64,000 nt of DNA from assembly GCA_033442325.1 (NCBI GenBank), contig JAWQFM010000010.1, positions 371,483 through 435,482 of the forward strand. The letters are read 5' to 3'. Both the position numbers and the translations under genes were made by a program. Origin of the DNA: Salpingoeca rosetta (taxonomy: Eukaryota; Protista; Choanoflagellata). Shown here piece by piece: positions 30,322 through 51,432 of this stretch. Below the pieces are notes generated by a model. That model was not told the DNA's origin, ran no database searches, and saw only the letters and a list, made by a program, of their open reading frames with translations. The stretch's first letter is position 1. The number at the start of each line of letters is the position of its first letter.

Positions 30322-33300
30322 CTAGATGACGCTTGTCTGCACGAGCGGATGGCGTGGCTTGGGCTTGTCGCTGCCGTGGTGTGCAGCTTCGGCACCAGCC
30401 TTTGCAGCCACAGCTGTGATGGGTACGTCAGCCAGGGTTACGCAGCCAGTGCCATTGGGAACGTGCTGGGAACCCGAACTAACACGCATCGGCGGCGGGT
30501 GAAGCGGCTGGTCATGAGGCAAAGGCTGTTGCTGCTGCTGGTGCTGGTGGTGCTGGTGGTGGTGCTGGATGTGTTGTCCTTGCTGTGGTTGCTTATGCAC
30601 CTGCTGGGACTGCGCCTGTGACTGCTGTGGTTGAAGTTTCTGGTAGTGAGGCTGGCCCAGTCCGGCAGCGTGCGACGTTGCTGGAGCAGCACCCACTGGA
30701 AAACTGTTCTCTGCAAAGTACATGGGGGCTTGTGCATGCTGCTGCTGCTGCTGCTGCTGCTGCTGCTGCTGCTGCTGCTGCTGCTGCTGCTGCTGCTGTT
30801 GTTGTTGTTGTTGTTGTTGTTGTTGTTGTTGTTGTTGTTGTTGTTGTTGTTGTTGTTGTTGTTGTTGTTGTTGTTGTTGTTGTTGTTGTTGTTGTTGTTG
30901 TTGTTGTTGTTGTTGCAAGAGGGCGTTGTGAATCGCCAGCACCTCTGCGTTGATCCTCGGGCTGGGCGACTCGCTCTGACTGCTGTCCGTGGGCGTGGCT
31001 GTCATGCTGTTCATGTTCACGTCGTGCACGCGTTGGCTGTTCATCTGCTGCTGCTGACGCCGCCACGAGGCATCCCACAGCGCCGCTTCCAGCTCAGCGT
31101 GCTTCCCTGCCACAGTCGTCGTCGGCTGCTGCTGCAGCAGTTGGTTCCCTGTGCTTGGTGGCACCGCAGAGGGTTGTGTCAGATGTTGGAACTGGGCTAG
31201 CAGATTGGCTGCTGTCAGCTGCTGTTGCTGCGGCTGCTGCTGGTTGTTGTTGCTGTTGTTGTTCTGCGCGGGCTGCGCATACATGTCTTGCACATGCTGC
31301 ACCGTGGCAAACTGGTTGACATCCGCAAGCGACTGTAAGCCATGCACGCCGGTTGACCCGCCAAAGCTTGGCGTGCGTCGGGTGCCATTGACGCCATACA
31401 CCCCGTTGCCAATCGCGTCCATCTCATCGGTGAGGGCCGAGCGAGGCCCACGCGTCCCCACGATATCAAGCACAAGCGCCAACTGCTGGGTGAGCTGGGC
31501 AAAGGTTGGGCGGGCGTCTCTCGGCAACCAGCAAGACTGCATCACCATGTACAGCTCATCCGGGCACGTAAACGGCCGCTCGAGCACCAGCCCTTGCTGC
31601 ACCGCAATCACCACCATGTTGTTGGGCATTCCGCTGTATGGCAGCGTCGACGCACTGCACATGTGTACGTGTGTGGTTTGTTGAGTGGGTGAGTAGTGAG
31701 TATGTGTTGTGCATGAGTGGGTGAGTGGGTGAGTGGGTGAATGAGTGAGGTGGGTGGTGGCCAATTCAAAGACAAAAGATATCTTCAACTGGCAGCAGTG
31801 AACCAGAGCAGGTGAAGACGTACTTGGTGGCGATTTCGTACATGGTGATACCAAAGCTCCACACATCGCTGGCAGAGGAGAACTGACCAGCACAGAACAA
31901 AGAGACAACAACACCCAGCACAACGAAGCAGCGAGTAAGCTCATGTGTACAGGGCTCAGGCTGCGGGCTTCCCAGGCGTTTCCGTCAGACACGCAACCTC
32001 AAACACATGCGAACAACGCATGCGAACAACACATACGAACAATTGCACAAACACACAAGTCCACACACAAGTCCGCACACACACACGCACGCACATAAGC
32101 ACGTCCACACACACACACACACACACACTCACACACACATAAGCCCATCCACACACACACACGCACACACACACCTGTCCGCTGAGGGCCTCTGGAGCCG
32201 TCCAGCGAATGGCCATCTTGGACATGGGGCTTGCCTCGTACTGGGGCGTGTTCTTCGCCAGCCCAAAGTCGGCAACCTTGCACCGCCGGTCGCCCGTGAC
32301 GAGGATGTTGCGGCAAGCAAGGTCCCTGTGCAGCGCCCCAGCCTCCGTCAGCGTCTTCATGCCGTGCGCAATGTCCAGGCAAAACTGCACCTTCTCCTGC
32401 CAGCTAATCTCGCGGCCCTGCTCAAGCTGGTCCTGCAAAAACGTGCTCAGGGACCCCAGCTCGCAGTACTCCGTGACCAGGCAGTACGGGCGGCCACGCG
32501 TGATGACGCCGACAAGCTGCACAATGTGCGGCTGCCCCGCAAACTGGGCCAGCACCGCCGCCTCCTGAAGAAACGCCTCCTCGTCACGCGGGGTGAGGTC
32601 GTCCTTGAGCACTTTGATCGCCACCTTGAAGGCATCCGGCACGTCCTCGTCGCGCGGCAGCTCCGGCCGGAACCGCGGCATGCTCTCGTACTGGCCTGTC
32701 AGCACGGGCTCACGCTCGTACCCGTGGCGGTGGCGGTTGTGGTGGTGGTGGTGGCCCTGCCCCTGGCCCACTGACCGCTCGCTCGCGCTGATGTATGTGC
32801 CAGAGTGCTGGCTCTCTGCGTAGTGGTAGCTGGAGCCACCACCCAGGTCGTGGGCGGCAGTAAGGGGGCCGGCCTTGCCACTGGCGCTGGCCTTCGTTGG
32901 CAACACGTCGTGTGCCGCTACGGACCCGTTGCTGCTGCTGCCGCCGTCCTGCAGGTCGCGGTGTCTCTGACCACTGCGGTGTGTGTTGGCTGTGCTGATG
33001 ACGCTGCGTGCACCGGCACCGCCGCCGTTGCTGCTGGACACCTTGGCCAGGGCGAAGCTGCCGTCATCGTCATCAGCAGCACCATCATGGCCGTTGCCCG
33101 GGCGGCCGCGGTGCTTGCTGTTGTTGCTGCTGCCAGTGTGGCTGTGTGCGCCGTTGCTGTTGCCAGCGTGTTTGCGGATTTCGCGGTCTGCCCGCGAGTA
33201 GCGCAGCGCCTTCTCCAGCACAATGCCCTTGTACACGGTGCTGAAGTTGCCCGTGCCAATCTGCTGCTGCATAATCACGTGCCGGCGGGGCAGCTCATAG

Positions 33301-48700: not shown

Positions 48701-51432
48701 ACACGCGCGCCCTCCCGTGTGGTGTGTAGGGCTTGGATGTGGTCGAAGGCATGTGCTTCATCAGCAGCAAAAGTATTTGTTTCACATATTCTGGCAGCTT
48801 CTTTTGTGTTTTTTCGCACGCACGAGCCATTTCCACCGTCATCCGCTTTGATATGTGCGCGTGTGCATGGAAGCGTCAATTGCAAGCGTGATTTGCATGC
48901 GCGCGTGCGCGTGCATGTGCGAGTGTGTGACGCCATCCTGCCGCTAACGGTCTCTGCTGCTCGCCACAGGTGCCATTCATCGCGACTTGGCGTGCCGAAA
49001 CATTCTCGTCACGCAAGACTTCGTCTGCAAGGTTGTGCACACGCGCGTGCTGCACAGGAAGAGAAGAGCTTGTTTCCAGTGAATGTGTCGGCAGTTTTGG
49101 AAGTGCACTCGCACCCGAAGCATGCTCACACAAATTCCATCAAACAATGAACAAACTCTTACACAACCACACACACTCACATAATTGCTTGTGGCACAGA
49201 TCACTGACTTTGGACTGGCGCGGAAGGAGACGCACTACACATCCACGTCGCACACGGTGCCCATCAAGTGGACTGCTCCAGAAGCCTTGGTTGGTCACCA
49301 GTGCCTGCCAGCAAGATGGATTTTGTGTAGCTGCCACACGCTCTCGTCCAACCTCTCAGACATTCGGCCTCACGATGCATGCATGCCCTCACTCCCTCAC
49401 TCCCTCACACACACACACACACACACACACACACTATCTCTCTCTCTCTCTCTCTCTCTCTCTCTCTCTCTCTCTCTCTCTCTCTCTCTCTCTCTCTCTC
49501 TCACACACACACACACACACTCTCACACACTCTCACACACACACAATCACGCGCATGCGTGTCCAGTCGAAGGGACGGTTCAGCACCAAGTCGGACGTGT
49601 GGAGCTTCGGCGTGTGCATGTGCGAGATTTTCCTCAACGGTAGCTCGCCGTATCCAGGACAGTCCAACGAGGCCGTGCGCGTTGGCCTCACATGCGGCTA
49701 CCTCAGGTTGCAAATGCCGTGCCTATGTGTGTGTGTGTGTGTGTGTGTGTGTGGTGTGTGTGTGTGTGTGTGTGTGTGTGTGTGTGTGTGGTGTGTGTGT
49801 GTGTGTGTGTGTGTGTGTGTGTGTGCGTCTGTCTCCGTCTGTCTGTTTGTATCAACGCGTATGCAAGTTAACGTGTGCATGCTTGAGGATCCCTTCGCAT
49901 GCAGCGCGCCCGCGCTCACGTCCATGTGCAATGCACAACTGTCGATCATCACCACCGCAGACACCCGCAGGTGCCGGGGATGCCGGACAACCTCTATGCC
50001 ATCCTCAAGAAATGCTGGGCAGAGGTACTGACCGGGGCCAATGGCCACAGAGGGCGCGCGCGCGCGCGTGTGTGTGTGTGTGTGTGTGTGTGTGTGTGTG
50101 TGTGTGTGTGTGTGTGTGTGTGTGTGTGTGTGCGAGAGAGAAAGAGAGACGTGCACACAGACAGGGAGACACACACGCACATTTGCCTTGTTTTCTCTGG
50201 TTAACTATGGCTTCGGGCAGGTTGCCTTGATATGCGTTGTGCATACACATCTCCGCTTCCCCTGAACACCTTCGCCTTGCTCATTCCCTCATTCTCTCCA
50301 ACATCACCTCGGTCTACTGTTCTTCTTCCGTCCAACCCGCAACACCCCTCGAAACAATTAGGAACCTGAACACCGCCCCACCTTTGCCGAGCTCCGACAA
50401 CAACTTATCTATTTGGTGCGTCGTTGTTGTCTCCCGCCTTCTACTCTACGCATTGGTCAGCTTGTGTTTCTAGCATGAGTTGCGAGCGCGCGCACGTGCG
50501 CACCAGTCAACAGCATTCAATTGCTCACGCCACCTTTTTCTCGTATGTGTGCGAATGTCTACATGTGCGCCTCTGTGTGTGTGTGTGTGTGTGTGTGTGT
50601 GTGTGTGTGTGTGTGTGTGTGTGTGTGTGTGTGTGTGTGTGTGTGTGTGTGTGTCGGCTGGGCAGATTGATGACGACCCTGCACTCTCCATGCTGCGGCT
50701 GCAAGAAAAGGCCATTCACAGCGACTCTGTGTAAGCGCGCATGAAGTTGCAACATCGTGCTTGGTTCCGTGAGCACAGTCACATCAGCCTCCTGCTTACA
50801 TGTTTGTCTGTGTGTGTGCTCATTTCTGCTTGCTGCCATAATGTGTGAACGCCACAGGTCCATGAATTCAAGTCGAAACAACTTGGCTGCCTCTATGGAA
50901 GGTATGTCTGGCGTCATTCTCCCGATACCCGTGTCACATCACGTGCTTGCCGAATGGTGTTTGCGTCCACGAACCCAGCCCGCCTTGTGCCCGTGAGTAC
51001 GCAATGCACGCTATTCACACACGCGCGCACACACACACACATACACACACGTGCACATGTTCGCCGTTGACTGCCAACTCAGGGCGGACATCACGGTCCC
51101 CGAGTGTGACGGAGAACACGATAGAGACGTTCACAGCTGTTGGCATCACAGAGGAAGCTGACATCAACCACGATCATGATGACGATGGTGAAGGCAATGA
51201 TGATGGTGGTGGTGGTGGTGAAGGCGATCGCGCTGGCGATTCTGACGACGAACATGGTAATTGTGATTCCACGAGACACGCCACGCAGCAGCAACATGCC
51301 CACTCACCCGCCGTCATCACCATCCAACCTGATGACGGTATCATGCGGACAACATCGCCGCACATGAGCAATTCCGGATTTGTTGCGCAGCGCCCCTATT
51401 CCGACCAACGCGCAGACTCCAGCTTTGTTTGA
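42754..51432 (+). CDS. Receptor tyrosine kinase B: signal peptide, mGluR/GABA-B-like Venus-flytrap domain, TM, tyrosine kinase, acidic tail with PDZ-binding end
   Basis: About 27 short exons (e.g. 42754-42974, 43341-43443, 43692-43859, 44084-44159, 44456-44524, 44710-44807). Signal peptide MAARLPLAWLTLALPLLVLLVAV. VFT motifs LRIG, VVIGPPSSACS, IPQISHSATSQALSDKDTFPTFFRIPPSD, WSSIGII-ATTDAWG and WTWLASDG. TM LVIVVALLAVLFVIVTVVSVIAY (~47173-47241). Kinase motifs LGAGHYGQVFKG, VAIK, HRDLACRNILV, DFGLAR, PIKWTAPEAL, SDVWSFG, CW and RPTF. Stop TGA at 51430-51432 after ..DSSFV. Confidence 0.93.
49437..49502. repeat. Intronic (TC)n microsatellite flanked by (CA)n
   Basis: Direct reading; the longest (TC)n tract in the window. 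Confidence 0.9.

Follow-up and report, generated by a model that had tools for sequence, protein, structure and literature searches.

The Venus kinase receptors (VKRs) of invertebrates consist of a signal peptide, a Venus-flytrap (VFT) domain (Pfam ANF_receptor), a single transmembrane (TM) helix and an active-looking tyrosine kinase (TK) domain (Vanderstraete et al. 2013, PMC3703292). Their kinase is InsR-like, with two juxtaposed tyrosines (YY) and the motif M(A/S)PE, and their VFT retains a conserved serine that contacts the ligand (VKR S66, the equivalent of mGluR1 S165) (PMC3703292). The G protein-coupled receptors (GPCRs) of class C (mGluR2/3/5, CaSR, GPRC6A) have a cysteine-rich domain and seven TM helices (7TM) behind their VFT, and Eph receptors carry ephrin-binding, FN3 and SAM domains along with their kinase. 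The kinases of choanoflagellate receptor tyrosine kinases (RTKs) are generally Eph-like (PMC10263333). We analyzed a 64,000-nt window of the Salpingoeca rosetta genome (GenBank assembly GCA_033442325.1, contig JAWQFM010000010.1, positions 371,483 to 435,482), which contains two RTK genes with the same overall architecture as VKRs. These genes, here called A and B, lie on either side of a gene resembling CIAO1, and all positions given below are those of the window. We consider it likely that A and B belong to a choanoflagellate-specific family of VFT-bearing RTKs, RTKN, that an ancestral gene joining a VFT to an Eph-like TK was duplicated before the craspedid choanoflagellates diverged, and that the likeness to VKRs is convergent.

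Both genes, the family RTKN and the VFT/TK architecture are already in public genome and kinome annotation. The S. rosetta kinome table lists PTSG_04221T0 and PTSG_04223T0 as 'TK RTKN', and in Table S6 of the same study RTKN has seven members in S. rosetta, two in M. brevicollis and no counterpart among Metazoa (Fairclough et al. 2013, Genome Biol 14:R15). PTSG_04221 has InterPro entries for GPCR family 3, extracellular ligand-binding receptor and tyrosine kinase, and it adjoins PTSG_04220 (alpha/beta hydrolase) and PTSG_04219 (IQ plus ankyrin) (Fairclough et al. 2013). Since the order of PTSG_04220 and PTSG_04219 matches the genes downstream of B, we took B to be PTSG_04221 and A to be PTSG_04223; the CIAO1-like gene is then probably PTSG_04222. 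The paralogues PTSG_00092 and PTSG_05453 have the same InterPro VFT and kinase annotation as A and B, and nothing that we found differs in kind from RTKN as listed there. Domains, phylogeny and function of RTKN are not described in the kinome study, nor is the position of two members on either side of CIAO1 (Fairclough et al. 2013). The initial annotation of this window had supposed that kinome surveys might already list such receptors, which was correct. It also knew of no functional description of such a pair, and our full-text literature search did not turn up functional work on any choanoflagellate VFT kinase either. Our additions are small: gene models that were verified, the division of RTKN into subfamilies, a contrast between the ligand pockets of A and B, and the finding that two old paralogues have stayed next to each other.

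The models of both genes were built by hand, using three-frame displays for A; all introns are GT-AG and the frames are closed. In Pfam searches, open exon pieces matched ANF_receptor and PK_Tyr_Ser-Thr at 30.3-35.3 kb on the minus strand (A) and at 43.5-50.0 kb on the plus strand (B), and the stored Pfam record for gene B contains PF01094, PF13458 and PF07714. No match to NCD3G or 7tm_3 was found in either gene with Pfam. Unlike in class C GPCRs, a single TM helix and the kinase come immediately after the VFT in A and B. Hydropathy shows two hydrophobic segments per protein and no more: the signal peptide at the N-terminus and a single TM helix. The Gly-loop, VAIK, HRDLACRN, DFG and APE motifs are intact in both kinases. 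Pfam, hydropathy and motifs thus agree with the layout first proposed for each gene, namely a signal peptide, a VFT, one TM helix and an intact TK.

For gene B, this layout was checked against transcripts on 44050-50049, using stranded RNA-seq (two runs) and two sets of transcript-like contigs. Twelve GT..AG junctions in the RNA-seq reads coincide with the gene model, the first at 44807/44964 and the last at 49706/49961. VFT exons, the TM exon (47132-47252) and kinase exons are joined within single transcript contigs, which have lengths of 2,987 and 2,791 nt. Gene B has its VFT, TM and kinase exons on one mRNA. Transcripts with ectodomain and kinase as separate genes would, according to the initial annotation, have refuted the idea, and for B the junctions and contigs join them. 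The model is also identical to residues 31-989 of XP_004995117.1. One unbroken exon of 1,918 nt in gene A encodes the last part of the VFT, the TM helix and the N-lobe of the kinase.

The relationship between A and B was examined with a maximum-likelihood kinase tree of 49 sequences and with a VFT tree. The orthologues found in other choanoflagellates stem from transcriptomes or contigs of 2-9 kb. In the kinase tree, 13 VFT-bearing choanoflagellate RTKs, including A and B, form one clade with support 91/93. Within it, the B subfamily (99/95*) contains proteins from S. rosetta, Microstomoeca, Hartaetosiga, Choanoeca and S. kvevrii. A is in a second group (96/85*) together with its Barroeca orthologue (100/99*), a protein from Choanoeca, PTSG_00092 and relatives of PTSG_00092. 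The VFT tree agrees with the kinase tree: a 92/95 split has the VFTs of the A/B clade on one side and, on the other, the VFTs of class C GPCRs, those of Mastigamoeba and those of a second choanoflagellate VFT-kinase type. Because A and B fall into different old subfamilies of one clade, they are, by these trees, ancient whole-gene paralogues that split before these choanoflagellate lineages diverged, and not a recent tandem duplicate. Their kinase domains are 44% identical and their VFTs 23%, and none of their intron positions coincides exactly.

Paralogy of A and B had been proposed from a list of shared motifs. The proposal stands on the two trees, in which both kinases fall into one clade rather than into unrelated ones, but not on that list. 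Most of the motifs are not specific to the pair: VTRGxP is also found in Eph receptors, and HRDLACRN is scattered over several unrelated kinase families. P-x-D-F just after the TM helix occurs in RTKN members and also in choanoflagellate RTKs without a VFT (P0179, P0202, P0226 and P0188), and may be a general juxtamembrane element of choanoflagellate RTKs. Clear tandem VFTs were seen in two relatives of gene B, three in P0286 (a Logan contig) and two in P0093 (Salpingoeca urceolata), so multiplication of the VFT module does occur in the family.

Two origins for the architecture had been considered at the outset, a pre-animal root of VKRs and an independent fusion of the two domains. Under the first, RTKN would be orthologous to the metazoan VKRs and the VFT-TK fusion would be older than animals. 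The shared architecture fits this, as may the serine retained in B by alignment to mGluR and GPRC6A, whose equivalent VKRs and class C GPCRs use for the ligand carboxylate. The VKR authors themselves raised the possibility for choanoflagellate RTKs: the VKR literature names M. brevicollis UTK12 and S. rosetta 'RTKS' as having a VKR-like architecture and speculates on a protist origin. The kinases of A and B, however, point elsewhere. Among the top 60 PDB matches, those for the B kinase include PTK6, Fes, RTKC8, EphA2, FGFR3, LCK and FAK, and those for the A kinase have Eph receptors as the best, with FGFR3, ITK and ABL also present. Neither InsR nor IGF1R is among the top 60 for either gene, whereas VKR kinases are InsR-like. 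The closest solved kinases, especially for A, are those of Eph receptors and of M. brevicollis RTKC8 (PDB 8E4T, PMC10263333), with which VTRGxP and P(I/V)(R/K)WTAPE are shared. The VFT ectodomain of A and B is unrelated to the ectodomains of Eph receptors and RTKC8, and the RTKN clade is not sister to metazoan Eph in the kinase tree.

Individual motifs show the same difference. The activation segments of A (DFGLAKNTPQYEASPMSKMAIRWTAPE) and B (DFGLARKETHYTSTSHTVPIKWTAPE) have WTAPE and a single activation-loop tyrosine, in contrast to the M(A/S)PE and YY of VKRs. The VKR motif GY(V/I)WFLPxWL (PMC3703292) is absent from the VFTs of A and B, and gene A differs from VKRs further by an extra N-terminal region and a kinase insert. 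No VKR was found among the 120 best relatives of the B VFT plus kinase, nor in a search with the VFT only, which is weak evidence as both searches pre-filter by shared short words. The kinome authors, as described above, found no metazoan counterpart of RTKN. The VKR link is not supported by the evidence gathered, and a VKR root in RTKN seems unlikely to us. Domain shuffling that converged on the same design is the most likely source of the resemblance, as judged from these comparisons. Thus, of the two origins, a lineage-specific fusion is favoured by the Eph/Src ranking, the missing YY and M(A/S)PE, the topology test described next and the lack of a metazoan RTKN, and the pre-animal VKR root is probably wrong. 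RTKS is described as InsR-like in Table S6 (Fairclough et al. 2013, Genome Biol 14:R15); if its members carry VFTs, they would be better candidates for a VKR root than the A/B pair.

VFT-kinase fusions have also formed elsewhere. A second choanoflagellate TK lineage (P0188, P0206 from Didymoeca costata, and P0198) carries a different VFT, and two of its members have a 5'-nucleotidase C-terminal domain (PF02872). This lineage groups with LRR- and Recep_L-type RTKs, not with RTKN, and a single clade of all VFT kinases was rejected by the approximately unbiased (AU) test (p = 0.0004). The fusion therefore arose at least twice in choanoflagellates. Fusions of a VFT or periplasmic binding protein (PBP) domain to a kinase are also found in Mastigamoeba and in bacteria. 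Since such fusions are recurrent, convergence with VKRs is the simpler reading. The Mastigamoeba balamuthi VFT-kinase is another independent combination, outside Holozoa. Two proteins of this amoebozoan, P0215 and P0147, have VFT domains and a kinase-like domain, and P0215 has a guanylate cyclase domain as well.

Several points weigh against the explanation preferred here. Most B-type orthologues have an activation-loop YY, as VKRs and InsR do, which also speaks for a VKR root; YY is found in many unrelated choanoflagellate RTKs as well. The convergence with VKRs is argued from rankings and motifs alone, as the kinase and VFT trees contain no VKR or InsR sequence. For the AU test, the group was defined with the tree already in view. 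Support for the joint clade (91/93) is good, though below the starred level. The assignment of A and B to PTSG numbers follows gene order and domain content and not an accession cross-reference, and the splicing of gene A and its 191-aa insert come from the genomic model rather than from reads. Finally, ligand binding, dimerisation and kinase activity of A and B are predictions from sequence.

The VFT of gene B could be modelled with confidence by AlphaFold2 (AF2; pLDDT 86.7, pTM 0.85). The solved folds closest to this model are the ectodomains of mGluR5, mGluR3, mGluR2 and CaSR (TM-score 0.70-0.75, E ~4e-25). Its neighbours in the ESM Atlas are class C GPCRs, plant GLRs and bacterial solute-binding proteins, and outside choanoflagellates the only named sequence relatives are an mGluR3-like protein, a chytrid class C GPCR and GPRC6A. 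The domain shares with class C GPCRs the motifs GPxSS...SxSATS...SDK...FFR...PSD and ASDG. When aligned to mGluR and GPRC6A, not to VKR, sequences, the B subfamily keeps the equivalents of mGluR1 Ser165, Thr188 and Asp318 and has a Trp at the Tyr236 position. In the same kind of alignment, the pocket of gene A is degenerate, with the equivalents of mGluR S165, T188 and D318 lost in A and its subfamily. A role in small-molecule sensing, which the initial annotation had put forward as a candidate for the pair, is a likely one for gene B.

These observations suggest a mechanism. The ancestor of the family would already have had a class-C-GPCR-like VFT joined to an Eph-like TK, and after its duplication ahead of the craspedid divergence, the lines leading to A and B would have become separate old subfamilies. 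The flytrap cleft of gene B may bind a small ligand of alpha-amino-acid type. Class C VFTs work as dimers, and closure of a dimeric ectodomain would bring the kinase domains together for trans-phosphorylation. The resulting phosphotyrosines could then recruit SH2 or PTB proteins. Amino-acid-triggered kinase activation is likely a model common to RTKN and VKRs (PMC3703292). Gene A lacks the residues that would contact an amino acid, and its ectodomain is extended at the N-terminus and its kinase N-lobe interrupted by a 191-aa insert, so it probably senses something else or acts independently of a ligand.

How unicellular relatives of animals use their large RTK repertoires is still largely unknown, and we know of no ligand for any choanoflagellate RTK. 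Gene B is a concrete candidate for a first ligand-receptor pair, since part of an mGluR-type amino-acid signature appears to be kept in its pocket. S. rosetta is genetically tractable.

The proximity of A and B raises the question of whether they act together. By a rough estimate, with ~7 genes in ~55 Mb, two RTKN genes are expected within 5 kb of each other by chance in roughly 1 of 100 cases. Because chance adjacency is this improbable, linkage retained from an old local duplication is likely, and the adjacency is most simply taken as the remnant of such a duplication, with the unrelated CIAO1 gene now in between. The initial annotation had gone further and described the pair as a candidate sensing system. 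A heteromeric version of this would make A and B an obligate heterodimer, similar to GABA-B or T1R, that signals through its TK domains. B would bind an amino-acid-like nutrient, A would serve as co-receptor or scaffold, and the linkage would have been kept since the ancient duplication for co-regulation. The dimeric habit of class C VFTs would suit such a receptor, as would the low odds of chance adjacency, the pocket residues kept in B and lost in A, and the six tyrosines in the kinase insert of A together with its long tail. It is an attractive analogy, drawn solely from the contrast between the two pockets. A and B do not share a promoter, however, as CIAO1 lies between them and the upstream region of B is shared with CIAO1. 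Their subfamilies separated before the craspedid radiation, and the closest paralogue of A is PTSG_00092, which is on another scaffold. In the parts of the differential-expression tables that were covered, only B is present. We regard a heteromer as improbable, even more so than a VKR root. The linkage of A and B is no evidence of joint function, and none was found for joint action.

Gene A has three additional features, an N-terminal region, the kinase insert and a long tail. It carries ~355 aa N-terminal to its VFT. No Pfam match was found for this region, BLASTP against both VFTs gave nothing, and HHalign against a VFT profile gave a probability of 0.2%. Language-model features of the corresponding region in the Barroeca orthologue led to ANF_receptor clusters (0.93). 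An AF2 model of that region, made from an 8-row alignment, was unusable (pLDDT 42). Inserts of 125-200 aa between the Gly-loop and the lysine are also present in the Barroeca orthologue of A, in PTSG_00092 and in the Barroeca orthologue of PTSG_00092; the Choanoeca flexa relative of A has no such insert. The C-terminal tail of A has 380 aa, with a polyglutamine run. Within the tail, at 30600-30900 on the minus strand, there is an unbroken run of ~65 glutamines and other Q/H-rich stretches. An exhaustive HMMER search with the large exon of A did not find an identical protein, and a word-indexed homologue search with its 706-aa open reading frame (ORF) returned distant kinases alone, as low-complexity words dominate it. 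The coordinates of all features are collected in Table 1.

Table 1. Features of the two kinase genes and of the region between them, in window coordinates
Feature	Position	Strand	Basis or remarks
Gene A, inferred PTSG_04223, family RTKN	30322..38069	-	ATG 38069, stop 30322, 11 exons, 1709 aa
Gene A exons	38069-37935, 37634-37418, 37156-36984, 36731-36574, 36352-36265, 36005-35646, 35335-35211, 34953-34390, 34092-32175, 31882-31824, 31654-30322 (incl. stop)	-	
Gene A N-terminal ectodomain region, aa 46-400	35267..37634	-	Possible second, degenerate VFT
Gene A Venus-flytrap domain, aa ~401-815	33468..35266	-	Pfam ANF_receptor 1e-9; jackhmmer VFT profile match aa 401-815
Gene A transmembrane helix VVGVVIGAVAVVGLAVGMMALVY, then juxtamembrane KPVDF (~33330-33350)	33384..33452	-	Hydropathy
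Gene A tyrosine kinase domain	31465..33284	-	Pfam PK_Tyr_Ser-Thr 5e-46 and 5e-9
Gene A kinase insert, 191 aa, low-complexity Ser/Gly/His-rich, 6 tyrosines	32637-33209	-	Gly-loop to VAIK lysine; from gene model
CIAO1-like WD40 gene, probably PTSG_04222	38548..41831	-	WD40 exons 39065-41831, alignment to human CIAO1, annotated range
Assembly gap, 100 N, (GT)n-flanked	41452-41551		Inside WD40 gene, between exons 41781-41831 and 41081-41182
Gene B, XP_004995117.1 / EGD83613.1 ('TK protein kinase'), inferred PTSG_04221, RTKN	42754..51432	+	27 coding exons, 959 aa from signal-peptide ATG
Gene B Venus-flytrap domain, aa ~59-480	42928..47163	+	Class-C-GPCR-like
Gene B transmembrane helix LVIVVALLAVLFVIVTVVSVIAY	47173..47241	+	Hydropathy; RNA junctions 46982/47132 and 47252/47406
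Gene B juxtamembrane TPHDF	exon 47406-47484	+	Next exon after TM helix
Gene B tyrosine kinase domain, 9 exons	47672..50415	+	Pfam matches on exons; RNA junctions

The public model of gene B (XP_004995117.1, our P0029) starts at an ATG at 42192 and has 30 extra residues, MTPNSFGKRCTTTRRRRPVVVVWSHHTPTT, before the signal peptide. A more plausible start seems to be the ATG at 42754, which immediately precedes the hydrophobic signal sequence. One candidate exon of gene B, 45801-45864, was rejected because 45620 is spliced straight to 45923 both in the contigs and in the public model. A look-up placed gene B on scaffold GL832963.1 of GCA_000188695.1. Its annotated neighbours there are a 1700-aa product at the position of gene A, with the same start coordinate as our model, and a 309-aa WD40 gene, and downstream of B an alpha/beta hydrolase followed by an ankyrin-repeat gene.

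The start codons of A and B are 4,685 bp apart, and the two genes are transcribed away from each other, with the CIAO1-like gene in between. Two WD40 exons of this gene are collinear with residues 94-133 and 188-236 of human CIAO1. The arrangement proposed initially, two oppositely oriented genes 4.7 kb apart around CIAO1, therefore stands. The 5' end of CIAO1 adjoins the upstream region of B. The assembly gap is outside all exons of gene A (<=38069) and gene B (>=42192), so it has no effect on the finding. Part of the CIAO1-like gene is probably unread in the gap: the remainder of its first WD repeat was not found in the sequence beside the gap, and the public 309-aa model begins just after the gap, its range reaching no further than ~41436. 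An additional WD-repeat exon, 41781-41831, lies on the far side of the gap from the public model. The surrounding eukaryotic DNA is rich in introns, most of which contain (GT)n/(CA)n microsatellites.

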